64,000 nucleotides of DNA from Rebecca billardiae RCC1528. Taxonomy: Eukaryota; Protista; Haptophyta. The notes beneath the pieces were generated by a model that made no database searches, had not been told where the DNA came from, and worked only from the letters and a program-made list of their open reading frames with translations. The translations under genes and the position numbers were made by a program. The DNA is taken from NCBI GenBank assembly GCA_965240325.2, contig OZ251236.1, forward strand, positions 1,054,001 to 1,118,000. The letters run 5' to 3'. Below, piece after piece: positions 11,092 through 64,000 of this stretch; the first letter of the stretch is position 1; the number at the start of each line of letters is the position of its first letter.

Positions 11092-11279
<188 letters not shown>

Positions 11280-42168: not shown

Positions 42169-43302
42169 GCCAAGGGCGGTAAGGGCTGTCAACTCCCAGT
42201 GGCGCCGAGTGGCGGAGGTTGGTTGCCCCTCAACTCGTGCGGCCTCGCGGCGCAGCGGCTAAGTCTCCTGGGGCGCCGCCCAGGAGGGCGCGTGGGGTGC
42301 GCACGCCGCGGGCTCCTGCGGCCGCGGCAGCGGCCGCGGACACGGCGCGCGTGGTTGGTCGCATGCTAGACAGTATGTAGTACCCTCCCACGCCGCGCGC
42401 CGTGCTCGCCGGTGCCCTCGCCGTGCCTCAGGCCAGCCGCGCACGCGCGCCGCACCAATGGCCAGCCGTGGCCACGCGCCAGCCGCCGGCGCGCGCGCGG
42501 TGCGCGGTGCGGTCGGCGCGGGTCGGGCGCGCGCCCGGGGCGAGGCTTGTGTATGATGGGCGCGCGTCATGCCGCCTCGCGCCGCCGCACACGAGCTTGA
42601 TCACGTTCCACGCGGCTGCTGAAGGGTGCTCGTCGAGCATTCCTCGGCCATCAGAAATGAGCTTGGACAAGCGGCTGTGAGCGCACTGAGTGCGAGGAAC
42701 GCGAGCACTTGGGGGCTCGCGTGCCATAGTATGATGCTAGTCGTGCTCATATCAGTGGTCTGCGCTTGTCTATCACGCGTCGCTGCCTTCCCATGATCGT
42801 CTCAACATGAGCATTTTCAAACATGGCAATGCACACTCGACAGCATGAGAACGCGTGCGCGCCGACCCATGCGGGCTCCAGCGCGGCGGCGCGAGGCGGC
42901 ATGACGCGCGCCCATCATACACAAGCCTCGCCCCGGGCGCGCGCCCGACCCGCGCCGACCGCACCGCGCACCGCGCGCGCGCCGGCGGCTGGCGCGTGGC
43001 CACGGCTGGCCATTGGTGCGGCGCGCGTGCGCGGCTGGCCTGAGGCACGGCGAGGGCACCGGCGAGCACGGCGCGCGGCGTGGGAGGGTACTACATACTG
43101 TCTAGCATGCGACCAACCACGCGCGCCGTGTCCGCGGCCGCTGCCGCGGCCGCAGGAGCCCGCGGCGTGCGCACCCCACGCGCCCTCCTGGGCGGCGCCC
43201 CAGGAGACTTAGCCGCTGCGCCGCGAGGCCGCACGAGTTGAGGGGCAACCAACCTCCGCCACTCGGCGCCACTGGGAGTTGACAGCCCTTACCGCCCTTG
43301 GC
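42169..43302. mobile_element. Foldback element copy 2 (420-bp inverted arms, 294-bp spacer)
   Basis: Arms at 42169-42588 and 42883-43302 look identical by eye. CAAGGG...CCCTTG termini and internal blocks are shared with copy 1. No TSD is visible. Confidence 0.85.
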
Positions 43303-43540
43303 GGTGGCGAGCGACAAAGAAATAGAGGGGGGCGAGGCCACTGGCAGTGGCGGACGCTTTCAGCTTGGCGCACAGCTCCAGGGCGTCCCTCGGCCAGCTG
43401 AGCGCGCCGTCAGCGCGGTCGGCCGGACCGAGCCCGCGCCCGCCGGCCTCGGGCGCGAGGCGCAGCGCGCGCTTCCTCCGCCGCGCCTGCGCCGGCGCCG
43501 CCCAGCAGCCCTTGCTCCCGCCACCCTGCGTCCGGCGCCG

Positions 43541-46171
43541 ATGGAGTTTGTGTACGGCGGCAGCTACCTCGACGGCGAGATACAGTCGCAGTTCAAGGCG
43601 TACCTGCAGAAGCACAGCGCCGACGTGGTCGAGGCGATCCTGGCCGAGCTCGACGTGAGCAGGCACTACGCGGTCGAGGTGCACGCGCTCGACCTGTACG
43701 CGAGCAACATGCTGCTGGGCGACCTGCTCGTGCACCAGCCCGAGCGCACGCTGCGCCTCTTCGACGGCGCCATCTACGACTACCAGGCGGAGATGCTCGA
43801 CGAGCTGCGGCAGATGGGCGACACGCTGGCGTTCCAGATGATTGTCAAGCCCCACGTCCACGCGCGCGTGTACGCGCTCCCGCGCTGCGCCGAGCTCTCG
43901 AAGCCGACGATCACGGCCGTGCTGAACACAGACGTGGGCCATCTCCTCTCCATCTCGGGCACGGTCACGCGCGCGGCGACGGTGCGCATCCTTCACGCGG
44001 AGAAGAAGGTGGAGTGCACCAAGTGCGGCAAGGCGCACAAGGTGCGCGCGCACCGCACCGCACCGCACCGCACCGCACCGCACCGCCGCCGGCGTGCGCG
44101 CGCGCGCCGCCGGCCGAGCGGCGCGTGCCCAGCGCGCGCGGCGCAGGTGTACGCGGAGCTCGAGCGGCGGCACGAGATGGCGATGCCCCCAGAGTGCGGC
44201 AACGACGACGGCGTGCGGCGCTGCACGTGCACCGCCTTCAAGGACGTCGACGGCTCCGAGCTCTGCCGCGACATCCGCGAGCTGCGCGTGCAGGAGCAGG
44301 TGACCAAGCTGGGCGTGGGCAGCGTGCCGCGCTCGATCACCGTGGTGCTGCAGGACGACCTGGTGGAGGCGGCGAAGCCGGGGGACGACGTGATCATCAC
44401 GGGCGTCGTCGTGCGCCGCTGGAAGCCCGTGCGCGCGGACACGCGCCCCGACATCGACTTTGCCCTCCGCGCGAACCACGTGACGGTGTGCAACCAACTG
44501 GTGGGCGCGGGGCTGGTGACCACAGAGGCGCGCGCGCAGTTCGAGGCGTTCTGGCAGAGCTGGGGCGCGGGCGAGGGGCGGGTCGAGGGGCGCGACGTGA
44601 TCCTGCGCTCGGTGTGCCCCTCGCTCGACGGCCTCTTCTTCGTCAAGCTCGCCCTCGCGCTCACGCTGCTCGGCGGCGTGACGTGTGTCGACTCGAACGG
44701 GCAGCAGGTGCGCGGAGAGTCGCACTTGCTGCTGATCGGCGACCCGGGCACGGGCAAGTCGCAGGCGCTCAAGTTCGCGGCGGCGCTCTCGCCGCGCTCG
44801 GTGGTGACCACGGGGATCGGCTCGACCAGCGCGGGCCTCACCGTCACCGCGAACAAGGACGCCTCGGGCGAGTGGGTGCTCGAGGCGGGCGCGCTCGTCC
44901 TCGCGGACGGCGGCGTGTGCTGCATCGACGAGTTTGAGACGATGAAGGAGGCGGACCGGGCGACCATCCACGAGGCGATGGAGCAGCAGACGCTCTCGGT
45001 GGCGAAGGCGGGGCTGGTGTGCAAGCTGCGCACGAAGACCACCATCATCGCCGCCACCAACCCGAAGGGCGGGCGGCAGGTCGACCTCGCCTTCAACCTG
45101 GGCGCCAACACGGGCCTCGCCTCGCCCCTGCTCTCTCGCTTCGACATTGTGCTCGTGCTCTCCGACGAGGCGGACGAGGAGTGGGACGAGCAGATCGCGC
45201 ACTTCATCCTCGAGCGCGACCGGAAGCGGCGCCGCGCGGACGCCGACGCGCCGCTCGACGCGCTCGACGCGCAGCCGAGCGCGCTCGGCGCGGCGGCCGC
45301 GCGCGCCGACGACGCCGACACCGCGCGCGCCGCGCCGGGCGCGGAGGAGCCGGGCGGCGGCGCTGAGCTGTGGGACGAGGAGACGCTGCGCGCGTACATC
45401 GAGTGCGCGCGCCGCGATTTCGACCCGGTGATGACGCCGCGCGCCGACCGCGTGCTCTCCGCGTACTTTGCGCGGCAGCGCCAGGCCGAGATGCGCAACG
45501 CCGCGCGCACCACCATCCGCCTCCTCGAGTCGCTCATCCGGCTCGCGCAGGCGCACGCGCGGCTCATGTGGCGGCAGACGGTCGAGCAGCTCGACGCGGT
45601 GTACGCGATCGTGCTCATCGAGCTCGGCGCGGACGGCTGCTCCGACGGGCCGCTGCGCGCGTCGGGCCGGCGCACCAGCGTGTGCCGCTCGCAGGTGCCC
45701 GCGCCGGGCGCGTCGCACGTCGTGGCCAGCGGCTTTGAGCACGACATCCTGTGCTGGCTCGGGCTGGGCGCGGACGAGGACGAGGACGGCGGCGGCGGGG
45801 CGGCCGGCGGCGCTGCCGCGGCCGGCGAGGGCGGCGGCGCGCACGCCCACCGAGCGGCGCATCCGCCGCCGCTCGCGCCGCCTCCGCGCGCGCAGCCCGC
45901 GACGCTCGCCGAGGCGTTCCCACCCGCGCCGGGCGCCGACGGGGGCGTGCCGCTCCTCGGCGGCTACGGCGACGGCCTGCCTGCCGGCCCGGCCAAGGAC
46001 GCGCACGGCGACGGGCTGGACGGGCCGGGCGCGGGCTGGGCACCCTCGCGCGCGCCCGGTCCAGCCGTGGCCCCGCCCCGCCAACCGCTCGCTGGGAGCA
46101 ACCACCTCGACCCGGCGCTCGGCTTCGGCGCGGGCGCCACCGACGACGCCGACGAGCCTTGGCTCTGGTAG
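43541..46171 (+). CDS. MCM9: DNA helicase MCM9
   Basis: RGESHLLLIGDPGTGKSQ, TTGIGSTSAGLTVTA, LEAGALVLADGGVCCIDEF, IHEAMEQQTLSVAKAGLVCKL and RTTIRLLESLIRLAQAHARLM. In-frame intron at 44042-44146. Confidence 0.93.
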   Translation: MEFVYGGSYLDGEIQSQFKAYLQKHSADVVEAILAELDVSRHYAVEVHALDLYASNMLLGDLLVHQPERTLRLFDGAIYDYQAEMLDELRQMGDTLAFQMIVKPHVHARVYALPRCAELSKPTITAVLNTDVGHLLSISGTVTRAATVRILHAEKKVECTKCGKAHKVRAHRTAPHRTAPHRRRRARARRRPSGACPARAAQVYAELERRHEMAMPPECGNDDGVRRCTCTAFKDVDGSELCRDIRELRVQEQVTKLGVGSVPRSITVVLQDDLVEAAKPGDDVIITGVVVRRWKPVRADTRPDIDFALRANHVTVCNQLVGAGLVTTEARAQFEAFWQSWGAGEGRVEGRDVILRSVCPSLDGLFFVKLALALTLLGGVTCVDSNGQQVRGESHLLLIGDPGTGKSQALKFAAALSPRSVVTTGIGSTSAGLTVTANKDASGEWVLEAGALVLADGGVCCIDEFETMKEADRATIHEAMEQQTLSVAKAGLVCKLRTKTTIIAATNPKGGRQVDLAFNLGANTGLASPLLSRFDIVLVLSDEADEEWDEQIAHFILERDRKRRRADADAPLDALDAQPSALGAAAARADDADTARAAPGAEEPGGGAELWDEETLRAYIECARRDFDPVMTPRADRVLSAYFARQRQAEMRNAARTTIRLLESLIRLAQAHARLMWRQTVEQLDAVYAIVLIELGADGCSDGPLRASGRRTSVCRSQVPAPGASHVVASGFEHDILCWLGLGADEDEDGGGGAAGGAAAAGEGGGAHAHRAAHPPPLAPPPRAQPATLAEAFPPAPGADGGVPLLGGYGDGLPAGPAKDAHGDGLDGPGAGWAPSRAPGPAVAPPRQPLAGSNHLDPALGFGAGATDDADEPWLW

Positions 46172-46392: not shown

Positions 46393-46533
46393 TAGTTGGC
46401 GCGCACCGCCAACCCATATTATTGCGTCCTGCGCCCAACTGGGCTGGGTACGCACCCAGCCGCCTTGGCGTCCGGACTCCTGGCCTCCTCAGCCGCCAAG
46501 GCGCCCACCCGGCATGGGCCCGATTCCATCACG

Positions 46534-47850
46534 ATGGCGGCCGACGACTTCGACAGCGCTCTGGGGTGGTGGGCACAGCTCCTCGACGCGCTGCCGGCGC
46601 TCATCGTCGTGTCCGACGAGGATGGCGAGCGCATCGCGCACGCGACGGCCCCCGCTCTCGCTCTCTCCGCGCACACCGCCGAGCAGGTCCGCGATCTGTA
46701 CGACCCGCGCACGCTCGTGCTCGGCGGACCTCGCGAGACGCCCGTGCGCGCGTGGGCCGGCGAGGCGCGCGTGCAGCGCGGCAGCGGGCAGCCGGCGCTC
46801 CCCGTGCTGCTCGTCGTGCAGCCACTCAGGCCACCCGCCGGCGCGAGCGCGCGCGACGACGCGCTCTCGCTCTGGGCCATCGTGCAGCGCGCGCCCGCCG
46901 CCTCGCCGGCGCGCGCCGAGCGCATCGCAGACATCCTCGAGCACTGGCGGCCGCTGCTCGCCGAGCTGGCCCAAGGCGTCGGCGTGCTCGACGCAGACAA
47001 CGCGTCCGACCTGAGCCGAGCCGTCCTCGCCCCAGCCCTCGACGCCGCGCTCGGCGGGCACACGTCTGCGGCTGCGGCCGCGTGGAGCGCGCACGTGCGC
47101 GCGCGCGCGCGCAGCGGCGCGCGCGCTGCCAGCCTGCGCCTGCCAGGCGTCGGCGTCGGCGCGGAGCGCGAGCTGGCCGTCTCGTTGCTGCCCCTCTGGG
47201 ACGAGCGCGGGCGCACCGAGCGGTGGTGCGCCCTCACGGTCGACGTCACCGAGCGCAGCCCGGTGCTTGCGCGCGCCTGGCGCCTTGCCGGCGCCGCGGG
47301 CGCGGGCGCTCGCGGCACGCAGTCAGCTGTCCTGGGGAGCGGCGCGCAGGGCACGGTGTGTGCGGCGCGCAGCCTCGCCGACGGCACGCTCGCCGCGGTG
47401 AAGAGCGTCGACGTCCGCACCACGCCCGCCGCCGAGCTCGAGCGCGTGCGGCGCGAGGCCGTGGCAGTCGCGCGCGTGCACGTCAGCGAGGCCGCGAACG
47501 CGGCAGCCGCGGACGCACCAGGCGGGTCGAGGCCGCTTCAAAACGGCGGCGGTGGCGGCGGCGCCGGCGGGCTCGACGGCGGCGGCGCGGCGCACGTGCC
47601 GCCGCTGCTGGGCGCGTACGAGGGCTCGCGCGCGCTCCGCCTCGTCTTCGCGCTCGCGCCCGGCGAGCCGCTGCAGCGCGTGCTCGACCGATCGGAGCGC
47701 GAGGGTGTGCCCCTGCCGGTAGATGTGGGCGCGTCCCTGGCCGCGCAGATCTTCATCTCGGTCTCGAATCTGCATGCCGCGGGCGTGTACCACTGGGACG
47801 TGAAGCCGGCGAATATCGTGCTCGATCTGGGCGCGCGGCGGCTCGCGCTC
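46534..47850 (+). pseudogene. PAS-PAS-Ser/Thr kinase, apparently truncated before the DFG motif
   Basis: Two PAS/PAC-like segments (LLDALPALIVVSDEDG; LPLWDERGRTERWCALTVDVTER), then kinase motifs LGSGAQGTV, AAVK and HWDVKPANIVL. The sequence then switches abruptly to (CTGAATATACGG)3 and lower-GC DNA. Confidence 0.7.
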
Positions 47851-48592
47851 TCTCTGAATATACGGCTGAATATACGGCTGAATATACGTGGTTTTACGCG
47901 CTTGTGTGCCACTGACAGATCGATTCAGCGACCTCGATTTATTAGGGTATACCAACTTCGGATGTCACGTATGTCACATATATAGCCGTCACTGAGTCCG
48001 GATAGGTCCGGATTGGGCGCCGAATTCCGAAGCCCCGGACCCGGGGCTTCACTTTAGTACACCGCAAACGAGCTACTGCTAGCCATTGCGCGTGCTGTGA
48101 CTCGATGTCAATTGCCCCAGCGTGGCCTGTCTGTGGGTGCCCCAATCGGCGGCGGCGACCCCTTCTCTGCCTGTAGTTCGACTCAGATGCATGCATTCAA
48201 ACCAGAAAATCCGACGAATTTCCGGACAGGTTACCGTGACGCTTTTTTATTTGCTTTTCTTTTATGTGCTTCTGCTACAATAAGATGATGACTATATAGC
48301 AGTCGCGTCACAGTCGTAAGTGAGTACAGTAGTAGATCGTCAGGCTATATAGATCATATACAGCGCAACTGGCGGGCGCTAGTAGACTCTGCTACATGCA
48401 CGATACTACTTTAATAGTAGTCTGCTGACAGGATGTGATGGCAGGCGGATGGACTGCATCAATATAATAGTTATTAATAAGACGGGACCGACGATGCATG
48501 GTGCGGGACCTCGTCGCCGCTACTGTCCGAAGAGACCCCGTGGTGCACGCACGGTGCGCCTACGCCGAGCGCGTGCCCGGGGCCGAAGGAAG

Positions 48593-50314
48593 CTAGCCGA
48601 AAATGTCGTCGCGGTCTAACTTCCTTCCCCGGTGGCGCCCGACAAACGTGCGCAGGTTCCACGGGTTGGACTCGAGCCTGTCGCGAAACAAGTTGGCGAT
48701 GCGCTCCTCAAAGCCTTGGTCGTTCATGAGGCGACTGGTGAAGGGGCTCGAGCCAAAGATGGACGCAAAGCACACGTGGTCCTCATCGCCGTGCGCCTGC
48801 AGCACATCGAGCCAGTGCTGGAAGCGCGCGTGCGCACGGTCGTCGAGCAAGCGCGCGGCCGTGCTGTTGCTCATGAATGTGACGAAGGGCTGCGCGCCGA
48901 GCACACCGAGCCAGTACTGAAAGCGCGCATGCGCATGGTCGTCGAGCAAGCGCGCGGCCACGGTGCCGCTCATGAATGTGACGAAGAGCTGCGCGCCGAG
49001 CACACCGAGCCAGTACTGAAAGCGCGCATGCGCATGGTCGTCGAGCAAGCGCGCGGCCACGCTGTTGCTCATGAATGTGACGAAGAGCTGCGCGTCGTCG
49101 AGCAAAACGAGCCAGTACTGAAAGCGCGCATGCGCATGGTCGTCGAGCAAGCGCGCGGCCACGCTGTTGCTCATGAATGTGACGAAGAGCTGCGCGTCGT
49201 CGAGCAACTCGAGCCAGTACTGAAAGCGCGCATGCACATGGTCGTCGAGCAAGCGCGCGGCCACGCTGTCGCACATGAATGTGACGAAGAGCTGCGCGCC
49301 GAGCACACCGAGCCAGTACTGAAAGCGCGCATGCGCATGGTCGTCGAGCAAGCGCGCGGCCACGCTGTTGCTCATGAATGTGACGAAGAGCTGCGCGCCG
49401 AGCACCTTGAACCAGTACTCGAGCCGGTCGTCGTGAGCGGAGAGGTCCAAGTACATCGCCCCATGCGTGAGCACGGCGCGCAGCACGGCGCCTCCGCGCG
49501 CGTGCCACTTGCGCAGCAGACCTTCCACCGCGGGCACGTGCGCGTCCATGTGCCGCAGGTGAGCGTGCTCGCGCAAGAATCGGCCGCTGTCGTTGTCGTA
49601 GAGCAGTCGTGTGAGCATCACGCGCGCCTTGGCTCTGGCTTCCACCTCCGCGGCCAGGTCACCCAGCGCAGCGTCGATGCGCGCGTCGACCTGCGAGTAG
49701 TCGTCCGGTGTCTTAAGCGCGCGCATGCCGTTGAGCCTGCACATCGTCAGCTTGAACAGCTTCACGGCGCCTGGGGCTCGCGCGGCGACGAGGTGCGCCG
49801 AGGGATGCGGCGCGCCTTCGAGCGCGAGGAAGCGGTGTTGGCCGAGCTCGTAGAGCGAGACGAGGTGCTGCTCGGAGATGAATGCGATGCGCTTCACGAG
49901 ACCCAGCTCGATGGCCTTGTCGAATGCCGCCTGGCATGTGCGCCCCGCCACGTACGCGCATGCGGGGAAGCGCGCGCACATCGAGTCCAGGTGCTCGTTG
50001 AAGCGCGTGAGCCAGGCGGACACGAGCTCGACGTCGCTCGCAAAGCTCGCGAGCACGCGCTGGTCAATCGCAGCATTCGTTGTGGTTGAGCTGAGCGTGC
50101 ACAGGTCCACCCAGGTGATGGGCGGCACGGGCGTAAGCAGCTCGCGCATCTCGATCTCGGTGCGGCTCACGTTCGTGACGCTCGCGTTGGCTTGCGGGTA
50201 CAGGCCCAGCACAAAGAGAGCATTGGTTCCCCGCGGCGTGAGCGGGGGCTCCCAAGACTTGGCATCGAAGCCTTGGCGCAAACACGTCCGTTGGCGCTTC
50301 ACGAGATCGTTCAT
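48593..50314 (-). CDS. 573-aa protein: putative UDG-like N-terminal domain plus six 33-34-aa tandem helical repeats
   Basis: Intact intronless ORF from ATG 50314. Repeats at 48818-49417, consensus YWLGVLG-AQLFVTFM[SNS]VAARLLDDHAHARFQ. N-terminal motifs LFVLGLYP, WVDLC, YVAGR and PHPS. Confidence 0.85.
   Translation of the reverse strand: MNDLVKRQRTCLRQGFDAKSWEPPLTPRGTNALFVLGLYPQANASVTNVSRTEIEMRELLTPVPPITWVDLCTLSSTTTNAAIDQRVLASFASDVELVSAWLTRFNEHLDSMCARFPACAYVAGRTCQAAFDKAIELGLVKRIAFISEQHLVSLYELGQHRFLALEGAPHPSAHLVAARAPGAVKLFKLTMCRLNGMRALKTPDDYSQVDARIDAALGDLAAEVEARAKARVMLTRLLYDNDSGRFLREHAHLRHMDAHVPAVEGLLRKWHARGGAVLRAVLTHGAMYLDLSAHDDRLEYWFKVLGAQLFVTFMSNSVAARLLDDHAHARFQYWLGVLGAQLFVTFMCDSVAARLLDDHVHARFQYWLELLDDAQLFVTFMSNSVAARLLDDHAHARFQYWLVLLDDAQLFVTFMSNSVAARLLDDHAHARFQYWLGVLGAQLFVTFMSGTVAARLLDDHAHARFQYWLGVLGAQPFVTFMSNSTAARLLDDRAHARFQHWLDVLQAHGDEDHVCFASIFGSSPFTSRLMNDQGFEERIANLFRDRLESNPWNLRTFVGRHRGRKLDRDDIFG
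48818..49417 (-). repeat. Coding tandem repeat, 6 units of 99 or 102 bp
   Basis: Units of 33, 33, 34, 34, 33 and 33 aa total 600 bp and are near-identical at the DNA level. Confidence 0.97.
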
Positions 50315-51453
50315 GGCCAGGCCGCCGCCGACGACACAACCACGAGCGCGGACTGCGTCGGCGGATGGCGGTTGGCGGATCTCATTCGTACGACCAGTAA
50401 AACGGAATACCCGTCTTCTGATCAAGGGTACTGTACACTACAGTTTACCCCGCAAGGCCGCAGAATTCCGGATTTCGCGTGGTCCACCGGAAACTGACCG
50501 GCAAGCGAGCCCGTTGGCCGGCGGGACGAGAAATGGCGGGAGCTGTGGGCGCGAGATCCCGTGTCAGATGGACTGCTGCCCTTGACGAGCGCCGAGCCGC
50601 AAATGTAGAATGCCGTGGTTCGCCCCCTGGTCGAAGCCGTCGTGGATGGCACGAGATCTGCGATTCGAACGGTGCGGGCTGGCCACTCGGGTCCGACGAG
50701 CCCACGGACTCCTGTCCGCACCGAGATCGAGCTGACGCATCTTGTCTCTTCTCGGCGTGGCCACTCCTTGCCATTCAGTCGTGAACTCACGAGCGACGAC
50801 GAGGAGAATGACTTTGTAAGATACGAGAGCTGTGCGCCCTTGTAAGAGCTCGTCCAGATTGTGGAAATCACGCAGCTTGTCCTGCTCGGGAGAGGCGTCA
50901 ACGTGGAGCAGCAGTGGATCAGAGCCAGGTTCACCTAAACCATGAAACACATGCTGTAGAGGGTGGCAAAGAACCTGAGCGTTGGGCATCCACCGGTACG
51001 CACGAGGCGCACAAAAGCGTGGGCGTGCCTGAGCCTGTGATGGACTGCTCCTCATGCGTGCTGCTGGCCATTGTGCGTGCGCGTGTGTGCGTGTGAGCGT
51101 GTGCACACTGCGCATACGCATACATACAGCTTGTCCTTCCTTCTCTACGAGATCGTGTCGTCGCGCGGGCTCGGAGGCCGCGCCTCTTCCGCGCAGGCAA
51201 ATACCGGCTGGTCAATGTCACCTTGCCCCGTGCGGGCACACCATCGCGCAGCGCGTGACGAGCCGCCGCCCTGGGTGCGAGGCGGCGCTCGGACGAGCCG
51301 CCGCCGATCCAAGCGTCGTGGCCATGCAAGGTACAGTAGTGTGGCAAGGAGGGAGCGAAGATTCGAATACTGTAAGAACGATTCGGAGTCCACGAGGTGG
51401 TGGTGAGCTTGGGGGCGCGCGCCCACGCGATCATCGATGGCGCCGCGAGAGCC

Positions 51454-52590: not shown

Positions 52591-54262
52591 GGCGCGGGCC
52601 GCTGAAATCAAGCGCCGAGCAGTGTCAGAAATGCCTCGTATCGTCAGTTTCAATCCGCAATCGACGCGCTGACAATCCACAATCGGTGCGCTTGGCGCCC
52701 TCGGCGTGCGCCCAGTCAATCGCCGACTGAATTGCGGTGTCATAATAACCGGGCTGCGGGACCTAGCTAGTAGCTGATCGCCCGTCGCCACAGCCTGGAC
52801 TGCTGGAGTCGCTGCCCGGCCCGCGCTTCAAGCTGATCAGCTTCACTGACTGCACCGTCCTGACTGTGCGGCAGGACGAGCGAGTGCCCATTGCAATCAC
52901 TCAATCAGGGATACGGAGACTATATATATATATGGGTGTCCGTTGCACAGCTTCGTGATGCGCTCTTCGTCCGCGCCCTCTCGCAGGACTAGCCAGGTCC
53001 TGGATCCCTTTGCGGATCCGGTCGAGACAGAGAGTCTAACTAACTACTGTCATACCCGGATCCGGGGGGGGGGGGGCACATTGCCCGCCTAGTTACTAGT
53101 AGGGCTCATGGCGGCACTGGCTGCATACCGTACGGTACACCGGCGGCAAGTGGTGGTCGGCCTCCGCCCCACGACGAGCGGCCGGCCATCCCCGTCTAAC
53201 GCACTACAGTATGACCTAGCTACCCGGGTACAGGAGTGGATACGGGCTAACTCACTTAACTGTTTATAACTTAACTGGACCGACAGGGGCTATCTGGACA
53301 CTCAGCGGGCCGGCGGCCTCTTGGCGAGGGCTCGTGGGCGAACGAGCACGAGCGCCCACTGGCGGGTCCCCACGACGGCGCACGATGTTTGCAGACCTCA
53401 CCTGGTCGTGGGGCGTCGTCTGCGCACGCGCCAGGTCGCGCTTCTCGACACCTTCGCCTTGTTTCGTGAGTTCCGCGCATTAAGGCCGAACGCTAGCGTT
53501 TCAAGCCGCAATGCGCGTGCGCGGACTCAGGAAGGGCGGACTCCGAGGCAAGGCGCGGTTGCGCTGGCGTGGGTAGGTCCCAGAGCAACCGTCCGAGCCG
53601 CTGCACACGCTTTTCCTCCGTGCGCGCGTCTCTGAGTTCGATTCCCATGCCTCAGCCAGTGCTAGGGGCTAATTGGACAGTGCCATTGCGGCCGCCACGC
53701 GTGGAGACGGGCCCGCAGCGCAGAAAGCGCGCTGCGGCGGAACTCCGGGGACCCCCTGAAGTCCATCCCTGGCGTCCCTTCGACCCCGATGCTCCCAAAC
53801 AGGCCTCCACGTGAGTTGGGTCGGCCACCGGGTCCAGTTTCACCCACCTGTCGTGTCCACGAGGACCAGGGCGGTGTTCACAGCAGCTTGATCTGGTTCA
53901 AGCCCGAAGCCTGCGGAAGCCCGCGAAGCTCCGGCCGGGATTTCATGAATACTCGCGGGAAATCAAAGCTGCTCCGATTTCTCAAACGTTGGAATCAGTA
54001 GGGAAAACCACAAATAGTGAGGGTTGAAAGGCTCCTACGAGAGATCGCGCGCCAATTGAAGGCTTTCATCACGGATGGAGCTTATTGGAGCTACTCCCAC
54101 CGTTCGATTCTTTCGGTCAATGAAAGTCGATTTGCCCGCGCGCGCCTGCCGGTGAGCGGGCCTCTCGTTTGCAACCCGGGACGAAGCTCGGCGCGTGCGG
54201 GCGAGACCCCGCAGTCCGCACGACCGCGAAAGGCAGGAAGTTGCCCTCCTCCCCCCGCCTCG

Positions 54263-55453
54263 ATGGCCCCGCTCACCGCCGACCGCCCGCTCCGCTGGGG
54301 GCTCCTTGGGACGGGTCGCGTTGCCCATGACTTCGCGGCCGCTATCTACTCTGCACCCAACAACGAGATCACGCTTGTCGCCGGTCGTTCGCCCTCCGGC
54401 GCGCAGAAGATGGCATCGATCTACGGCGGTCGCGGCACGACGCGCGAGGGTACCGACGCCTACCAGGAGCTCGTCGAGTCGCCAGATGTGGATGTCGTGT
54501 ACGTCGGAACTTACCAGCGGGACCACGCGGCGCACGTCCTCCTCTGCCTGCGCCACGGCAAGCACGTCGTCTGCGAGAAGCCCATGTGCATGACTGCGTC
54601 CGAGGCTCGCCAGTGCGTAGCGGAGGCGCGCAAGAACCGCGTGCTGCTCGTGGAGGGTCACTGGACGCACTGCTGGCCCGCCGCGCGTGCTGCCACCCGG
54701 CTCATCCAGGAGGAGGGCAAGATCGGCGAGGTCCAGAACGTCACGTCCGACTTCTCGTTCCCATACCCCACCGACCCGAGCAAGCCCGAGTTCCAGAATG
54801 CGATGGGAGGCGGTGCGACCATGCTGGTGGGTGTCTACCCTCTCTGCATGGTCATGCGCCACCTGGGCAAGCCGTTGAGCGTCCAGGCCGCGGGCATCAC
54901 CGAGTCCACGTCGAAGGAGGGCTGCGTGGACACCTCGGCCTCCGTCGTGATGAAGTTCGATGGCGGCAAGACGGGCGTCGCGACGTACGGCTGGAAGGGC
55001 GAGGGGCGGCAGGAGACGGTCATCACCGGGGACAAGGGGTTCATCATCCTAAACAACCCGGCGCACGCGCCCATCCAGCTCACGCTCGTCGTGCAGGCGG
55101 GCGAGCGCAACAAGTACACGACCGAGGTGATGGAGTTCCCGATGCCAAAGCACCCAGAGGGCCTGCCGCCGATCATCCACCCCCACTCGGAGGGCTTCCT
55201 GTACGAGGTTCAGGCCGTGGAGGCGGCGCTTCGCGCGGGTCACGCCGAGTGCGAGTCCATGCCCATGTCCGCCACCGTGCACCTGGCCGAGACGGTCGAC
55301 AAGATCCGCATGGCCCTGGGGGTGCATTGGCACACGGACAGCCGCTGGCCCCGACTCCTGGCTCGCATGCCCGCGACCGCGCCGACCGCGCTCGCTGCCG
55401 CTGTCGGGGTGGTCGGCGCCGGCCTGACTCTTGTGATGGCTGCTGGCGGCTGA
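54263..55453 (+). CDS. Gfo/Idh/MocA oxidoreductase (dihydrodiol / D-xylose dehydrogenase-like) with a hydrophobic C-terminal tail
   Basis: LRWGLLGTGRVA, DVDVVYVGT, GKHVVCEKP and GGGATMLVGVYP. Confidence 0.9.
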   Translation: MAPLTADRPLRWGLLGTGRVAHDFAAAIYSAPNNEITLVAGRSPSGAQKMASIYGGRGTTREGTDAYQELVESPDVDVVYVGTYQRDHAAHVLLCLRHGKHVVCEKPMCMTASEARQCVAEARKNRVLLVEGHWTHCWPAARAATRLIQEEGKIGEVQNVTSDFSFPYPTDPSKPEFQNAMGGGATMLVGVYPLCMVMRHLGKPLSVQAAGITESTSKEGCVDTSASVVMKFDGGKTGVATYGWKGEGRQETVITGDKGFIILNNPAHAPIQLTLVVQAGERNKYTTEVMEFPMPKHPEGLPPIIHPHSEGFLYEVQAVEAALRAGHAECESMPMSATVHLAETVDKIRMALGVHWHTDSRWPRLLARMPATAPTALAAAVGVVGAGLTLVMAAGG

Positions 55454-56157: not shown

Positions 56158-57973
56158 ATGCGCGCAGGATTTTGGGGATTTTTGTAGCAGATGTGACCGG
56201 ACCCCTAGTGGACGCATTTCGCTGCCAATGATTGCGTTTGTAGTAGATGCTAATTTTAACGATAGTAACACTTAGGGGAATGCAGGGTGGAATAGCACAT
56301 AACACCAGCCGTGTGTTCGAACATTCCGTCATAGTAAGATGCTTGAATTGTAAGAGCCTGAAACAGCTCGCCAACCATAGAAAAGAGAGATTCGGTCGGC
56401 TTTTATGTCGCTTGAAGTAAAGTATTGCCGGCATCTGAAGTCATGAACCGTCGCTTCTCAGTGGCGGATATCATCAGGTTATGGCGCGATGTTCTAGGGC
56501 ACGCGATCCGCATCGTTTCGCACGAACCCTCGCGGGCGACGAGATATATCATTGTCAAAGTCCAAGGCAGCCATCGGCGCCATTCCCCAGCTCGAGACTT
56601 TAATTCCAAGGCGCTGAGCAATTTCAGCCGCCAAGCTACAGACTTTCATCATGCAATTCAATCGGTTTCACCATTCAAGAGCAAGGCCAACAGCAGCCAT
56701 TGTTCATGCAAGTTACTACTCCAAAGATAAGGAGCATCGGCACACACATCACATGAGGTCTTCGGACTACACATCCAAGGGTCCAGGGATTCTTCACCAC
56801 TTGGGAAGGTACCCTGAACTGGACCAGAGACTACCATGCAGTCATCAGAACTTTCTTTTCATTTCGAGGAGACGTCCCGATCATCACAGGAAGCTTTCGT
56901 GCAATGACCCGAAGGCAATCAACGGAATTCCGAGAGCATTCCGACCGAGGAAAGCAGGCACACGAAGATTCCAAAATCTTCGATGCCACTTCCATCAGCT
57001 TTCACCAGACTGAAACATCAGCCAACCTGAAACCACCGCCAGCAAGGGGGACGCCCCTTCGCCCCACGAAACACAGTAAGGACCGCACGACACGCGCGAA
57101 GCGCCAATCATGAGCTCACGGGTGCAAAACGTCGTCCGATCCTACGATCAGCGCAAGCGGACCCGCATCGATCGGCTCCGCCACCACGGGAGCCCCATGC
57201 TCCTCGACATTGACTTCGGCGACAACGCCGGATCGGCACGGAACGACACCGGCCGCAAGGAAGACATCGAGTTCCCATCCTCGCGATGGTACGACCAGGG
57301 CGGGAGCCCGCGTACCTTCTACGAGGACTGTCGCAGCTCCATCGAGAACCGCGACCGCCACGACGGACACTACCCGCGTGGCGAGCAAGGCCCCAGTCGC
57401 CAAGGCAACGGCGGCGGCCGGCATCACGCACCGACCGAGTACAAGCACCACCGGCGGAGCGACGACAACCTCGTACCCTACGACGGGACGTGGTTCGCGG
57501 AGAGCACAAGGCCATCCAACTCCACGCATGCGCACTGGCACCCGCCCCACTCGCGGGGCCACCGATACCATCCCTCGCAACACAGCGAGGCCGAGCGCGC
57601 CGCGCCGCGCACCGGCGCGCGCGCAACTGAACCCATGACGATCCCCAGCGCGCAGGAGCGATCGTCGGCGCACGACAAGTACCCAAACGGCCCGCGGCCC
57701 TCCGGCACGCTGGGCTGGGACTACAAGCAGCCCGTCGTGCTCCCTGAGCAATGGCGAGTGCCCCCGTCCTCGCAGAAGGACGACTCGCCGTCGTCGCAGT
57801 CGCTGCATCGCGACGCTACGACACAGACGGAATCCCCGGACTCGGCGTCGCCGACTGCGACTGGACACGACCAGCATGGAGGCAGCAGCGTCGCAGCGCC
57901 GGAGGCGGGCGCGATGGCGGGCGACCTCCCGAGACGACTGGCCTACAGTAGTGGCCTTGACCCCGACCGCTTG

Positions 57974-59566
57974 ATGACGATGAGCGTGTCGGCAGCGCGC
58001 CGCCTGGCGCTCGTGGCGGCGCTCGCGCTGCTCGCGCCGGCCGGGGCGCGGCGGCCTGCCCTCGCATCGCGCGCTGAGCGCGCGGCAGAGCGCCCGCCGG
58101 CGCCGCCGTCCAGCCGGCTGCCGCGATTAGGCCTCGCGAGGCGGCTGTGGGGCGAGCGCAGGCGCGGCGCGGCGCCGTCCAGCGCCGACGCGGCCGACGT
58201 GGCGCCGCCGACGCGGGCGAGCGAGTGGTCGCTCCGCGCGGCGGCGTTCCTGCTCATCCTCTCCCTCGGCGTGGTCTCGCTCGCGCCCGCGCCCGCGCTG
58301 ATCGCGCGGCTTGGCACGGAGCCGGCGATGACGCGGCTGCAGTGGCTCTCCGCCACCTCCGCCGTCACCGAGATCGGGCTGACGCCGCTCGTGGGCGCGC
58401 TGGTGGACGACGTGGGCCGGAAGCCGATCCTGATGCTCACCCTCCTCTCCGTCGCGCTGATCAACGGCGCCGTCGCCGCCTCGCCCGTCACGCCGCTCGT
58501 GTGCGCGTCCAAGTTTTGGAACGCGCTCGTGATCGGTCTTTTCTTCCTCACGGCGCAGGCGACGCTCGCGGACATGTACCGCGCGCACCCGCGCGCGCTC
58601 GCGGCGGCGTCGGGCGTGATCTTCGCGCTGGTCAACGGCGGCTTCGCCGCGGGCGTGCAGCTCTCCGCCGCGCTGCCCAAGGGCCTGCACGCGCCGTACG
58701 CGGTCTCGGCGCTCGCGGCGGCGTGCGCGCTGCTCATCGTGAGCCGCGGCACGCTCGAGACGATGCCGCCGTCGGAGCGCAAGGTGTTCCGCGCGCGCAA
58801 GGCGCTCGCCTCGCCGCTCTCGTGCCTGCTCCTCTTCCGCACCTCGCCCAAGCTCTCCGCGCTCTCCGCCCTCGTCGTGCTCCAGCTGCTCCCCCTCTTC
58901 ATGGGCGACGTGCTGCAGGTGCACGCGCTCGAGGTCTGGAGCCTGCGCCCGACGGAGGTTGTCTTCTTCTTCTCCATCCTCGGCGCGTCGGGCGTGCTGG
59001 CGAACACGGCGGGCGGGCACCTGGTGCGCCGGCTGGGGATCCGCGGGTTCACCGTCATCGCCACCGTCTCGCACCTCCTCTTCTGGGCGGGCATGTGCAC
59101 GTCGCACCGCGCGGCCGTCGCGCTCTCGGTGGTTGGCGCGCTCGGCGCCGCGCGCTCGCTCGGCGTGTCCACGCTCATCACGGCGGAGGGCACGCGCGCG
59201 GGGCGGCCGCAGGGCGAGCTGTCGGGCGCGCGGGCGAACCTGATCGCCGTGCTCAAGGTGATCGGCCCGGTGCTCTACTCGCAGCTCTTCGTCCGCGGCC
59301 GCGCGCTCGGCGCCGCGCAGCTGCCCTTCACGTTCAACGTGGCGCTGATGGTGGCCGCGCTCGCGCTCGCGCACACCGTCCTTTCTGACGAGTCGGGCGC
59401 GGCGGGCGGCGCGGCGGAGGGCGGCGCGCTCGCCGCGATGGGGATGGCGCCGGGGGGCGAGGGCGGGGGCGATGCCAAGGCCGCCGCGCGCCGCCGCCGC
59501 GCCGAGCCGAGGTCGCGCGCGGTGCGGGCAGCGAGCGCGCACGCCACGGCGGCGCGCGCCCCCTAG
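57974..59566 (+). CDS. MFS transporter (TetA/MFSD14-like) with a signal plus transit-like presequence
   Basis: Motif A GALVDDVGRKPIL, AQATLADMY, QGELSGA..VIGP and about 12 hydrophobic segments. A signal-peptide-like RRLALVAALALLAPAGA suggests a start at 57974 or 57980 rather than 57110. Confidence 0.85.
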   Translation: MTMSVSAARRLALVAALALLAPAGARRPALASRAERAAERPPAPPSSRLPRLGLARRLWGERRRGAAPSSADAADVAPPTRASEWSLRAAAFLLILSLGVVSLAPAPALIARLGTEPAMTRLQWLSATSAVTEIGLTPLVGALVDDVGRKPILMLTLLSVALINGAVAASPVTPLVCASKFWNALVIGLFFLTAQATLADMYRAHPRALAAASGVIFALVNGGFAAGVQLSAALPKGLHAPYAVSALAAACALLIVSRGTLETMPPSERKVFRARKALASPLSCLLLFRTSPKLSALSALVVLQLLPLFMGDVLQVHALEVWSLRPTEVVFFFSILGASGVLANTAGGHLVRRLGIRGFTVIATVSHLLFWAGMCTSHRAAVALSVVGALGAARSLGVSTLITAEGTRAGRPQGELSGARANLIAVLKVIGPVLYSQLFVRGRALGAAQLPFTFNVALMVAALALAHTVLSDESGAAGGAAEGGALAAMGMAPGGEGGGDAKAAARRRRAEPRSRAVRAASAHATAARAP

Positions 59567-60598: not shown

Positions 60599-63500
60599 TC
60601 AGCACCGATTGCGGCTGCTGCCGCCCGCCGCCGCCGCCGCCGCCGAGCCGGCGCGTTGGCGCGCGATCGCGCTCATCACGCTGGTGATCTTGGCGGGGCG
60701 CGCGGCCGCATCGCCCGCGCGCAGCACGACGGCCGCGTCCTCCGCACCGTTGGCGCCGATCGCGCGCGCCGGCCAGGTCTGGCCCTTGGCGCCGCCGCCG
60801 CCGGCGGGGGGCGTGACGGTGGCGGGCGCGCCGACGACGGTGGCGGCGTCCGAGAGCGTGGCGGCCGAGACGTCCACGCCGCCCACAGGCGCACGCGCCG
60901 CCGCCGCCGGCCCCGCGCCGCTGCTCCGCTCGGCGGCGCGCGCCTCGGCCTCGGCGCCGGCCTCCGCCGCCGCGCCGGCCGCCAGCGCGCTCCGCACCCG
61001 GGGCAGGTACGCGCGCACCACCTCGTTGAAGTGCGCGACGTTGCTCAGCTCGACGAAGCGGAGCAGCGCGGAGGGCACGCGCGCGCCCGGCCCGTCGACG
61101 GTGTACCCACTTGAGTAAGACGAGTACATCGAGTGGTACGTGTCCACCGCCGTCACCACGTCGGCGCGCGCGCTCGCGCCTCCGCCGAGCAGGACGGCGT
61201 CTGCGGCGTCGACCGAGCCGCCGACGACGCGCCACGCGTACAGCGCGACGGCGTGCTGCAGCGTCTCGAAGAGCGCCGGGCTGCACAGCAGCACGAGGCG
61301 GCGGCACCGGCCCAGCCGCGCGGGCAGCTGCGCGAGCTGCTCGGACGCTGAGAGCCCCGGGTCCTCGCACATGTCGTCGAGCCACACGCGCGGCACGCGC
61401 GCGTGCTGCGCCTCAAACGCGGCCGCCCACGCGCACAGCGCGCGCGCGCGCGCGCCCACGTCGTCCGACGCGGCGTGCAGCACGTACGCGTCCGCCCACG
61501 GCGCGGCGTCCGCGGCGGCGCGCGCGAGGCCGCCGAGAGGCGCCGCACCGCCGCTTGGCCGGAGACTGCCGCCCGCGCGCCGCGCCTCCCAGCCGAGATG
61601 GCGCGCGGCCTTGGGCGAGGGCGGCGGCGGCGGCGGCGCGCTCGTGCGCGAGCGGCGGCGCAGCCGTAGCTCGCCGCCGCCGCCGCCGCCGCCCCCGCCG
61701 CCGCCCGCCGAGCCGAGCGGCCCGGCCGCGCCGCCGAGCCGGCGGCGCACGAAGGAGCCGCGAGGCGAGGCGACGCTCGCCAACGGGTGCGCGTGCTGCG
61801 AGGCGGCGTGGACGAGCTCGGCGCGCTCGGCGGCGCCCAGGGGCTCCGCGTGGAAGAGGGCCAGGGAGTCTCGCACCACGTGCCGCGCGCGCCGCGCGCT
61901 CGTCGCGCCGCCCTCGCCGAGCAGCACGGCGAGCGGCGCGAGCCCCGAGTTCTGCGCGTCGGGCGCGCAGAGGCGGAGACGCATCAGCAGCAGCAGCGCG
62001 TGCTCCCGCGTCGAGCGCGGCGAGCGCCAGAGCAGCGAGGCGGCGGTGGCGAGCTGCACGGCAGCGAGCAGCAGCTGCACGCCGAGCACCGGCCCCAGCC
62101 TCACCTGCACCGTGCAGCAGCGGAGCGCCGTGATCAGGTTGAGCGTGCCGGCGAGCAGCGCGCGGGCCCCAAACACGCGCCACACCGTGCCCAGCAGCCG
62201 ATGCAGCTCGCGCGAGCGCGCCGGGCCGAGCAGCACGCCGCCCAAGACGCAGACGGCGTGCACCGAGCACGCGCAGGTGCACAGGTACGTGGCGCCGACG
62301 GCGCGCGTGAGCCCCACGTGCGCGCGCGCGGCGGGGCACATGTCGACGAGCGCGGCGCCCGCGGGCGCGGGCCTCAGCTCGGTGAGTACCAGCCCTGGGC
62401 GCAGGGTGCCGTATGCCGTCGTCGCCGAGATGGTGAGCAGGGCGAGCGCGAGCGCGAGGATGGGCGGGCGGTGGCGGCGGATCGGGAGCAGCGCGACGCC
62501 CGCGCACGCAAAGGCGATGTTGAGCGCGAGCGCGGAGAGCGGGCGCACGAGCCACAGCCACGGCGGCGGCGGCCCCGCCTTGGAGCCCAGGTTGAGCCGC
62601 AGCCCGAGCGAGCCGAGCCACAGCGCGTACGCAAGAACAGACAACAGACCGAGCAGCCGGGTCGGCGTGGCGAACGCCGAGTGCGCCGAGTCGATGGCGC
62701 ACTCGCAGAGCTGCTCGATGGCGCGCGGGTGGAGCAGCTGCGCGCTGCCGGCCTCGGCGCGCGCCGCGGCCGCCGCGGCCGCCGAGTCGCACCGCGCGGG
62801 CTCGCCGCCGCCGGCCGCGTCCGCGGCGGGCGGCCGCGGCGACTTGGCGGAGAGGGTCCGCCCGCTGCCGTCTCCGTTGCAGCTGAGCGCGCCGCCGGGC
62901 ACTGGGAGCGCCGTGTGCGCGCCGAGCGCATACGAGTCGCGCGCCGGGCGGTGCGCGGGCGGCGTCGCGCTGTGCGCGAGCCGATCGCGCACCTGCCGCC
63001 GCACGTCCGGGCTGCCGGGCGCGCCGCCGTCGGCCGCCGCGCCCACGCCCTCGCTGCCCGTCGTCGCGAGCACGACCGCGTGGTACGTCTCGCGCAGCAG
63101 CTCGAGCACCGGCTGGGGCGGGAGCGCGTGCTCGGCGCTGAGGAGCAGCAGGTGCGGCACGGGGCGCCCGCCGCCGCGCGCGCCGCGCGCGGTGGGGCGC
63201 ACGCTCACCAGCGCGTCGGGCGAGTGCAGCAGGTGCGCGGTGTGCGGCAGCGCAGCCATCAGCGCGACCACTGCGCGCGCGGCGCGGCGGAGGGCGGCGG
63301 CGACGTGAGCGCGCGCGGGTGCGCTGGCGGGCGGGCGCGCCTGCGCGCGGTGCGGCGCGGTGCGGCGGCGTGCGCTGGCGCGCAGTCGCCCGCGCAGCCG
63401 TGCGGTGCGGCGCGCGCACCGTCGTACGGCTTGACGTAGCCGTTGAGGTGCTGCGCGATGTGCGCGCTCTGGTCGAGGTCCTCGTACGCGCAGACGTCAA

Positions 63501-64000
63501 ACTCGGCGCGCTCGACGCCGCAGAAGGTCTCGAAGTACCACTGCTTGGTGCAGCGCGGCGGGAGGCGGCCCTCGCACAGCTTGAGCCACAGCCCCTCCAG
63601 CCCGAGGAACTGCGCGTCCGCCAGGTACCGCATGATCGGGCACTTGAAGCGCAGCGCGAACGAGCGCGCAAGCTGCATCGGCAGCATCGGGATCGCGTGC
63701 CGCGAGACGACCGTCATCGGGATGCCGCGCGAGAAGCAGAAGCGGTACACCGCGTCCGCGGCGGGCGGGTCGTAGCCGCAGTTGACCGAGCTGTCCGCCC
63801 GGTACGCGCCCGGCGCGGACGCGTCCGCCTCCAGCCCGCCCTGCACGCACACGCGCGCCACCTTGGCGCACACGAGCGCCGGCTCGTCGTGGATCACGTC
63901 GGCGAGATCGGTGAAGCCCGAGATGATGACGACGGTGAGCCCGTGGTGCGGCGCGGCGCGGAGGACGCGGCGCAGCAGCGCCGAGCCCTCGTGCAGCCGG
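60599..64000 (-). CDS. HopQ1/XopQ-like nucleoside-hydrolase-fold domain, multi-TM region and degenerate TIR-like domain; 5' end outside the window
   Basis: Exon 64000-63420 reads LTVVIISGFTDLA, VCVQGG, NCGYDPPAADAVY, GIPMTVVSRHA, YLADAQFLGLEGLW, WYFETFC. Intron 63419-63271 (GT-AG) gives KPYDV-VALMAALP. Hydrophobic segments lie at ~62660-62030 and the TIR-like segment at ~61500-61000. Confidence 0.75.

Follow-up and report, generated by a model that had tools for sequence, protein, structure and literature searches.

A haptophyte gene combining a HopQ1/XopQ-like hydrolase domain, a membrane bundle and a predicted TIR-like domain

XopQ and HopQ1, type III effectors of Xanthomonas and Pseudomonas syringae, respectively, feature a nucleoside-hydrolase fold (PDB entries 4KL0, 4P5F, 7JLU). 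No substrate was known for these proteins for twenty years, until XopQ was found to hydrolyse 2'cADPR to ADPR (bioRxiv 10.64898/2026.06.15.732069). The D120N and D399N changes abolish the activity, which is highly specific: 2'cADPR is cleaved, 3'cADPR and pRib-AMP are not. HopQ1/XopQ have been reported to be inactive on standard nucleosides, and 2'cADPR cleavage is known for bacterial XopQ only. HopQ1-like (HLP) proteins are described also from algae, fungi and mosses (PMC6019455). As far as its accessible text goes, that study analyses the hydrolase domain alone, mentions neither transmembrane regions nor TIR fusions, and does not list Pavlovales among the algae named.

Multi-pass membrane TIR proteins, expressed during virus infection, have been described in the haptophyte Gephyrocapsa (Emiliania) huxleyi (PMC12489294). 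In these proteins, identified by Pfam TIR models, N-terminal membrane helices are followed by an intracellular TIR domain which retains the catalytic Glu; they are reported without additional domains, and no hydrolase is mentioned. In the bacterial type VI Thoeris system, a TIR protein producing 2'cADPR and the membrane effector ThsG are separate polypeptides.

The gene described here resides at one end of a 64,000-nucleotide stretch of contig OZ251236.1 from the haptophyte Rebecca billardiae RCC1528 (the window). Its features are listed in Table 1. An earlier note, made from the sequence alone, had proposed that the region encodes a HopQ1/XopQ-like domain fused through a membrane bundle to a TIR-like domain. 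The peptides which had suggested the first domain (VIISGFTDLA, VQGG, NCGYDPPAADAVY, GIPMTVVSRHA, YLADAQFLGLEGLW, WYFETF) are all found in the minus-strand frame starting at 63999, those which had suggested the second (DAYVLHAASDD, VWLDDMC, LPARLGRCRRLVLLCSP, ETLQHAVAL) in the 889-codon frame starting at 63268. The surroundings of the gene are eukaryotic, and a neighbouring ORF encodes an MFS protein, for which no identical product was on record.

Table 1. Coordinates of the gene and of its predicted domains in the window. Residues are numbered along exon B.
Feature	Position	Strand	Remarks
Exon A	63420..64000	-	193 codons from 63999; cut by the window end
HLP domain, middle and C-terminal part	63420..64000	-	content of exon A; HopQ1/XopQ-like, nucleoside-hydrolase fold
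Intron	63271..63419	-	149 nt, GT-AG, phase 1
Exon B	60599..63270	-	2.67 kb, single open frame; 889 codons from 63268; HLP domain end, linkers, membrane bundle, TIR-like domain, tail
HLP domain, C-terminal end	63059..63270	-	residues 1-70; aligns right after KPYD in a dozen relatives
Low-complexity linker	62714..63058	-	residues 71-185; Ala/Gly/Pro-rich; unconserved, aligned in P0001 alone; coding periodicity retained
Six-helix membrane bundle (predicted)	62030..62713	-	residues 186-413; from hydropathy and AF2
Juxtamembrane segment	61793..62017	-	residues 418-492; small, mostly helical; model helices 234-308
Disordered linker	61544..61783	-	residues 496-575; Gly run and Pro run; pLDDT <50, model residues 312-391
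TIR-like domain (predicted)	60947..61534	-	residues 579-774; ~190 residues
C-terminal tail	60602..60946	-	residues 775-889; Ala/Gly-rich; unconserved, relatives stop near residue 783
Stop codon	60601-60599	-	ends the exon B frame

The intron is located precisely where the earlier note had placed it, and is bounded by GT at 63419-63418 and AG at 63272-63271. The codon split by the intron specifies V, and the protein reads KPYD-V-VALMAALP across the junction. GC3 is 0.93-0.99 along exon A and in every segment of exon B, flat at 0.86-0.90 in the intron, where no codon periodicity is seen, and about 0.5 past the stop codon. The Ala/Gly-rich tail (GC3 0.95) is probably translated. The two exons were searched apart, and the junction was judged from the coordinates of the separate alignments. 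In at least 8 relatives, the alignments to the two exons are separated by exactly one residue, which falls between residue 193 of exon A and residue 1 of exon B. At the intron position, contig L001 has a gap of ~150 nt together with a change of frame. Uninterrupted ORFs carrying both domains occur in transcript-like contigs and in MMETSP transcripts of relatives, and P0001, the closest relative, is collinear with exon B residues 30-783. The alignments of relatives, transcript-derived ORFs included, are collinear over the junction, and on this basis exon A and exon B are parts of one nuclear gene, in agreement with the fusion originally proposed. The N-terminus lies beyond base 64000.

Exon A is, by its database matches, a HopQ1-like domain of the nucleoside-hydrolase fold, which fits the HLP clan of algae, fungi and mosses (PMC6019455), and is not the effector itself. 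This conclusion is drawn because XopQ entries only are matched in the PDB (7jlu_B, 4kl0, 4p5f; E 2e-15 to 5e-15, no other match below E 0.1), and the NCBIfam score is far below the equivalog cut-off. The best NCBIfam match is to the XopQ model NF041355 (E 7.4e-21), at 74.3 bits versus the 500 bits which define XopQ equivalogs, a class to which exon A hence does not belong; the RihC model is matched at 1.4e-3. According to both PDB and NCBIfam, classical nucleoside hydrolases are less close to the domain than XopQ is, and the HopQ1/XopQ likeness proposed in the earlier note is borne out. The sole Pfam family matched, PF01156, scores 24.3 bits (E 3e-5) in the truncated exon A domain, under the gathering score of 34.2, and 45.5 bits in the full-length relative P0005. 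Exon A is 50-63% identical to at least 13 relatives, 63% being the highest value in the family. One distant relative, L004 (46%), was found in a metagenome scan with exon A, which did not retrieve the contig of the window or the missing N-terminus.

The comparison with XopQ/HopQ1 is drawn from the named matches to the window protein and to P0055, a full-length relative which matches XopQ at E 3e-25 with the N-terminal Asp motif aligned. The stretch of P0055 matching exon B residues 1-70 also aligns with XopQ. The last residue of exon A is an Asp (codon 63423-63421, D of KPYD) corresponding to P0055 D287, which is aligned with the Asp of the XopQ YD motif; its equivalence to D399, a catalytic/Ca-binding residue of XopQ, follows from the P0055 alignment and chain-index arithmetic. 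This Asp is present in 13 of 14 sequences, window copy included. The first ~100 residues of the hydrolase domain, where the non-canonical Ca-binding Asp motif including the XopQ D120 equivalent is expected, lie beyond base 64000; among the relatives covering the region, 10-11 out of 11 feature the motif. In contrast to the bacterial effectors, the window domain is encoded by an intron-bearing eukaryotic gene, lacks a secretion-signal context, and shares its polypeptide with a membrane bundle and a TIR-like domain. Identity to XopQ/HopQ1 is ~25-35%, a level at which the substrate choice of XopQ would not be transferable to the window domain.

The C-terminal domain is predicted to be a divergent TIR-like fold, an assignment based on structural comparison. 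The AF2 model of the domain (pLDDT 92, pTM 0.87) was compared by Foldseek to the PDB, and TIR domains account for nearly all of the top 50 matches (E 2.4e-3 to 0.1, probability 0.9-1.0; TM-score by target ~0.4-0.53 for the TIR matches). They include MyD88, RPS4, MAL, RUN1, RPV1, SPARTA (TIR-APAZ), AbTir, Roq1 and SARM1. The same fold matches were obtained with a longer AF2 model, and the structural elements, a parallel sheet with helices on its flanks, follow the TIR order. When the family profile was compared to the PDB, the top three matches were to TIR domains, with the WC..E motif in register, at E 0.07-0.11. TLR and SIGIRR TIRs can be aligned to the family at its DxxxSHSxxD-type first strand and at the WC..E motif following strand C. 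The earlier note had made its reading depend on the domains matching the NH/XopQ and TIR folds, and both folds were matched.

The sequence of the domain is beyond the reach of Pfam. Curated TIR models (Pfam PF01582 and PF13676, PADLOC, NCBIfam) gave no match to the window copy at E<=1, and scans of exon B against Pfam, PADLOC and NCBIfam families were all empty. Exon B matched in PDB sequences nothing but low-complexity noise against antibody linkers. Word-index protein searches with whole exon B or with residues 588-770 were blank, with Ala/Gly-rich words dominating the 8000 candidates; as relatives were later found by an exhaustive HMMER scan, these blanks are uninformative. Among relatives, the weak Pfam match seen most often is to TIR_2, in 3 out of 35 (best E 0.0031). 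Fungal HET domains are regarded as TIR-related, and the three blocks of the TIR-like family presumably resemble the three blocks of the HET domain (PF06985). HET matches were faint and not significant in 2 of the 35 relatives (E 0.16), and absent in the window copy. Matches in a viral structure library were to generic folds only (TIR, deoxyribosyltransferase and SLOG-type, E 0.016 or worse), and therefore point to no close viral relative.

The window domain differs from known TIRs also for an extra C-terminal helical extension, and for the replacement of the catalytic Glu by Ala at exon B residue 675. Of 151 aligned family domains, 72% have Glu at this column, as do 16 of the 19 relatives which carry a hydrolase domain; P0001 has Ala, as the window copy. 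The W and C residues of the WC..E motif are likewise replaced in the window copy. Other conserved columns are retained (D14, H19, D23, W35, W50, D52, C55, D57, W100, GG104-105).

Six helices are predicted between the two soluble domains. They span residues 2-46, 54-75, 80-112, 134-163, 168-202 and 208-229 of the AF2 model (pLDDT mostly 75-93), and Kyte-Doolittle peaks occur across the same region of exon B. Thus, of the 6-7 transmembrane segments previously suggested, the hydrophobic stretch is real, and hydropathy and model support six helices, not seven. Relatives feature 5-6 hydrophobic segments at this position, but the bundle is poorly conserved in sequence, about 7 of the 150 best relatives aligning there. 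Fold searches with the bundle model gave no significant or credible match, and no known channel. The number of helices being even, the hydrolase and TIR-like domains are predicted to share one side of the membrane. K and R residues number 10 on the even loops plus the segment past helix 6, versus 5 on the odd loops; this weak positive-inside bias suggests that the shared side is cytosolic.

In an exhaustive HMMER scan of 1.84 billion representatives, 569 relatives of the C-terminal domain were found at E<=1e-3. This number, as the E value of the exon A match to XopQ, shows that the similarities first noted are not due to chance. The hydrolase-membrane-TIR-like layout was recognized in at least 19 of the 150 best relatives. 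Fused relatives include proteins from Diacronema lutheri and Pavlovales sp. CCMP2436, as well as MMETSP transcripts, in all of which the sequence is continuous over the splice junction. By these comparisons, the gene is a member of a haptophyte family with multiple copies, which share the three-part layout. The MCM9 protein encoded in the window is 63% identical to a D. lutheri protein; along with the named family members, it points to Pavlovales-type haptophytes, as anticipated by the algal origin initially assumed. The Pavlovales sp. CCMP2436 locus L003 has a GC content of 46%, versus ~70% in the window. We found no description of a hydrolase-membrane-TIR fusion in the searchable literature.

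Each structural claim of the earlier note survived when tested on the window's own sequence, and its structural reading is supported. Concerning function, we infer, with moderate confidence, that the protein is a membrane-anchored module facing the cytosol, involved in signalling by NAD-derived nucleotides of the cADPR type, in which the TIR-like domain of the window copy acts as a scaffold. The family as a whole may be viewed as a module, anchored in the membrane, for signalling by NAD-derived nucleotides. Most members have the catalytic Glu in their TIR-like domain, which would make a cyclic-ADPR-type signal upon protein clustering. By homology to XopQ, the hydrolase domain would remove the signal, either setting a threshold or ending the response. 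In the window copy, the TIR-like domain may be a scaffold for assembly or regulation, in a paralogue which would erase or modulate the signal. The term scaffold, used already in the earlier note, fits this copy because the catalytic Glu is missing; since this copy retains the Asp matching D399 and has Ala in place of the TIR Glu, a scaffold/eraser paralogue is likelier than a signal producer. We know of no haptophyte TIR product. The idea of a receptor or immune module had been based on XopQ being the ligand of Roq1; it is better motivated by the report on 2'cADPR cleavage, and stays conjectural. TIR, 2'cADPR handling and a membrane component are combined also in type VI Thoeris, but there in separate bacterial proteins rather than in a single algal one, and the likeness is by analogy only.

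Alternatively, the XopQ-like domain may bind a ribosyl nucleotide and gate the six-helix bundle, acting as a channel or a membrane-disrupting effector comparable to ThsG, with the TIR-like domain promoting clustering. A membrane-spanning effector activated by 2'cADPR has been described (bioRxiv 10.64898/2026.06.15.732069), the position of the bundle is conserved across relatives, and the window copy, lacking the TIR Glu, is unlikely to be a producer. We consider this sensor role unlikely, as the conservation of the catalytic Asp residues in the family speaks for an enzymatic role instead of simple ligand binding, and the bundle resembles no known channel and varies in sequence.

It is more doubtful that the protein is a housekeeping, membrane-tethered nucleoside hydrolase involved in purine/pyrimidine salvage, with an unrelated C-terminal interaction domain and no TIR signalling. 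PF01156 is the only Pfam match, and one D. lutheri relative is named in UniRef inosine/uridine-preferring nucleoside hydrolase domain protein; against this, the domain resembles XopQ far more than it does classical hydrolases, the Asp motif found in relatives is of the HopQ1 type, and HopQ1/XopQ are reported not to act on standard nucleosides. Salvage would also leave the recurrent fusion to a TIR fold unexplained.

The replacement of the Glu, as of the W and C residues of WC..E, along with the long low-complexity linkers and tail, might be taken as signs of a decaying, non-functional paralogue under relaxed constraint. This is quite improbable: 889 codons are open with uniformly high GC3, the other conserved columns are intact, the AF2 model is confident, and the Ala is shared with P0001, and hence was inherited within a sub-branch, rather than being a private lesion. 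That exon A and exon B are two adjacent genes, a notion favoured by the gene start falling outside the window, is hardly tenable, as the hydrolase domain extends into exon B (residues 1-70), at least 8 relatives span both exons with a single residue at the junction, and continuous two-domain ORFs occur on transcript-like contigs.

The recurrent fusion of XopQ-like and TIR-fold domains provides independent genomic evidence, of the "Rosetta stone" type, for a functional link between XopQ and TIR. Antiviral immunity has barely been charted in haptophytes, a major group of marine phytoplankton. The TIR-like family (at least 569 cluster representatives) is large and undetected by Pfam, and surveys based on Pfam TIR models, as that carried out in G. 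huxleyi, would overlook it. The fusion suggests that nucleotide signalling derived from TIRs may exist in haptophytes and include its own off-switch. Tentatively, these algae could run an endogenous 2'cADPR-like TIR pathway, in which the TIR-like domain as producer and the XopQ-like glycohydrolase as eraser reside on one membrane protein. If true, XopQ-type enzymes would be regulators of ancient origin, built into eukaryotic TIR signalling, and the bacterial effectors would have branched off from this enzyme family as secreted forms, rather than being an invention of pathogens.

The gene is encoded on the minus strand and occupies the right-hand edge of the window, from base 64000, beyond which it starts, to 60599. 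One intron interrupts it there, and residues are numbered per exon. The open frame running downward from 63999 contains the peptide strings quoted in an earlier note on this DNA, and the GT-AG, phase 1 intron has exactly the limits proposed there; the split codon encodes Val, in the junction peptide KPYD-V-VALMAALP. The window is ~70% G+C and long ORFs arise in all frames, and codon periodicity was examined for this reason. GC3 is 0.93–0.99 in all segments of both exons, low-complexity linkers and tail included, flat (0.86–0.90) in the intron, and ~0.5 in the 3' flank.

Exons A and B were searched separately, and the junction was judged from the coordinates of the separate alignments. Exon A is also matched by 19 of the 150 best exon B relatives (E down to 1e-72, 50–63% identity), and in at least 8 of them the positions aligned to residue 193 (exon A) and residue 1 (exon B) flank exactly one residue, that of the split codon. 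The junction residues align at positions 287 and 289 of the relative P0055, whose 969 codons run without a break in one ORF of a 3.3-kb JGI contig. P0055 and the MMETSP transcripts P0042 and P0137 each carry the layout on a single uninterrupted coding sequence. A gene-model artefact is the rival reading at this point; relatives are collinear over the junction, MMETSP transcripts included, which argues for a single gene across both exons, and not for the separate transcripts considered in the earlier note. In contig L001 pieces resembling exon A and exon B lie in different frames ~150 nt apart, which indicates that this relative, too, probably has an intron at the position of the window intron. 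Given this intron-sized gap, the called L001 protein P0001 is a fused-gene model cut short at the 5' end. Its alignment to exon B is collinear over residues 30–783, so that no further intron is needed.

Coordinates of the gene, its neighbours and the contig of the closest relative
Feature	Position	Strand	Remarks
Exon A	63420-64000	-	frame from 63999 until GT at 63419-63418
Intron	63271-63419	-	149 nt, GT 63419-63418, AG 63272-63271, phase 1
Exon B	60599-63270	-	889 codons counted from 63268; stop 60601-60599
MCM9-type helicase ORF	43298-46168	+	MCM, MCM_OB, MCM_lid domains
PAS fold + partial protein kinase ORF	46396-47982	+	probably one exon of larger gene
GFO/IDH/MocA oxidoreductase ORF	54017-55450	+	
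MFS transporter ORF	57110-59563	+	convergent with studied gene; MFS_1 at residues 378-720 only
L001 (Logan run ERR14847148)	1-2700		71.5% GC genomic contig with closest relative P0001, 36-40% identity

Neighbouring genes (MCM9, PAS-kinase, GFO/IDH/MocA oxidoreductase, MFS transporter) are ordinary eukaryotic ones, and the best named relative of MCM9 is found in Diacronema lutheri (63% identity). MCM9 and the named family members place the window in a haptophyte of Pavlovales type other than D. lutheri. The exact product of the MFS ORF has no match on record; the low-complexity N-terminal stretch of ~370 residues preceding MFS_1 may not be coding, or may form an exon of its own. Several repeats mark the window. 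A 99-nt tandem repeat (48801-49419, 6.2 copies, 92% identity), encoding 33-residue protein repeats, resides in a minus-strand ORF (48596-50425) whose Pfam matches, to PRY and DUF4149, are odd and fragmentary and give no clean domain. Near-perfect two-copy tandem duplications at 8284-8917 and 13596-14139 have units of 319 and 269 nt, 98–99% identical. A (CT)57 microsatellite is found at 11162-11275, and a (GCA)n / 63-nt repeat at 26451-26622. G+C content is extreme at 24001-26000 (83%) and 32001-36000 (78–80%), with short GC-rich tandem arrays.

Family members were identified in D. lutheri (KAG8460936.1, KAG8465511.1, KAG8466208.1), Pavlovales sp. CCMP2436 (KAJ1636960.1, KAJ1640798.1), and MMETSP transcripts. 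Annotation of the named members goes no further than hypothetical protein or nucleoside-hydrolase-domain protein.

The only Pfam match of exon A is to PF01156, sub-threshold in this truncated piece (E 3e-5). Among all PDB sequences, significant matches are restricted to three XopQ entries, 7JLU_B (2e-15), 4KL0 and 4P5F. The top NCBIfam model is XopQ (7.4e-21), and RihC scores 1.4e-3, a comparison that speaks against the rival reading of the gene as a salvage hydrolase. The HopQ1/XopQ likeness first noticed in the raw sequence thus holds. Since XopQ is the best match in both collections, but its NCBIfam score (74 bits) is far below the 500-bit cut-off, the N-terminal domain is classified by sequence in the HopQ1-like (HLP) branch of the nucleoside-hydrolase fold, and not as an XopQ equivalog. 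XopQ and the full-length relative P0055 can be aligned across 307 residues (E 3e-25), the N-terminal Asp motif being matched. This motif is kept in 10–11 of 11 relatives covering its region, which in the window gene lies beyond base 64000. The Asp of KPYD, the last exon A residue, corresponds via P0055 D287 to the Asp of XopQ 'YD', D399 by chain-index arithmetic; 13 of 14 sequences, window copy included, retain it. D399 and D120 are the two residues at which mutation abolishes XopQ activity (bioRxiv 10.64898/2026.06.15.732069).

The membrane bundle recognized earlier stands; its count, given as ~6–7 segments, is put at six and not seven, as hydropathy peaks and an AF2 model (exon B residues 185-775; pLDDT 80, pTM 0.75) agree on six long helices. 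Relatives feature 5–6 hydrophobic segments at the corresponding place. In the model, helix 6 leads into a small helical segment; a disordered Gly/Pro linker of 80 residues then connects to the C-terminal domain. As the helices number six, both soluble domains would lie on one membrane side; the distribution of K+R (10 on even loops and the post-helix-6 stretch vs 5 on odd loops) weakly favours the cytosol. A fold search with the bundle found no match among solved structures.

The C-terminal domain matches no curated model in Pfam, PADLOC or NCBIfam. Two word-index searches with exon B found no relatives, because of Ala-rich words, whereas an exhaustive HMMER scan found 569 at E<=1e-3 (106 at E<=1e-10), the best only 40% identical to the window protein, which is itself absent from the collections; word-index blanks on GC-rich algal proteins are therefore not proof of absence. 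Nearly all 569 align to exon B residues 585-770 only, and the domain is thus real and widespread. Its AF2 model, from an alignment of 34 relatives, has pLDDT 92 and pTM 0.87. TIR domains make up nearly all of the top 50 fold matches in the PDB (probability 0.9–1.0, but modest E-values of 2.4e-3 to 0.1 and TM-scores of ~0.4–0.5), and include MyD88, MAL, RPS4, RPV1, RUN1, Roq1, RPP1, SNC1, SARM1, AbTir, SPARTA, and TIR-STING. Among PDB sequences, the family profile ranks SIGIRR and TLR15/TLR2 TIRs top (E 0.07–0.11), aligned at the first-strand and WC..E motifs. Weak Pfam matches in relatives are most commonly to TIR_2 (3/35, best E 0.0031), then to HET (2/35, E 0.16). The TIR-like domain suspected earlier is hence supported at fold level by model and fold matches, curated sequence models being silent on this copy, and is filed as TIR-like at fold level, beyond current sequence models. 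One sub-branch (alignment A1; P0103, P0115, P0130) features a WxDKxCIDQ-type second block and a RLWC..E third block; these recall the fungal HET domain, to which matches are faint only.

At the alignment position of the catalytic Glu of TIR domains, 72% of 151 family domains have Glu, as do 16 of the 19 relatives fused to a hydrolase. The window copy and P0001 have Ala there; in the window copy the adjacent W and C have changed as well, while other conserved columns are kept. A decaying paralogue is the rival to be weighed against this pattern of lost and kept residues.

HLPs in algae (PMC6019455) and multi-pass-membrane TIR proteins of G. huxleyi (PMC12489294) were already known. Neither the HLP-membrane-TIR-like fusion nor the TIR-like family of this gene was found described in the full-text literature searched. 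Algae and fusions are unmentioned in the preprint that reports cleavage of the TIR product 2'cADPR by XopQ (bioRxiv 10.64898/2026.06.15.732069).

The structural description of the gene (architecture, recurrence, residue states) is put forward with high confidence. Its mechanism is a tentative proposal, somewhat more open to doubt than to belief, with a ligand-gated membrane effector as rival. Recurrent fusion of an XopQ-like domain to a TIR fold is expected if both act on the same small molecule, and for this reason the family may be read as a membrane-anchored TIR-signalling module carrying its own signal eraser. The window copy, Asp kept and Glu lost, would then be a paralogue that modulates or erases the signal, and its TIR-like domain may serve assembly.
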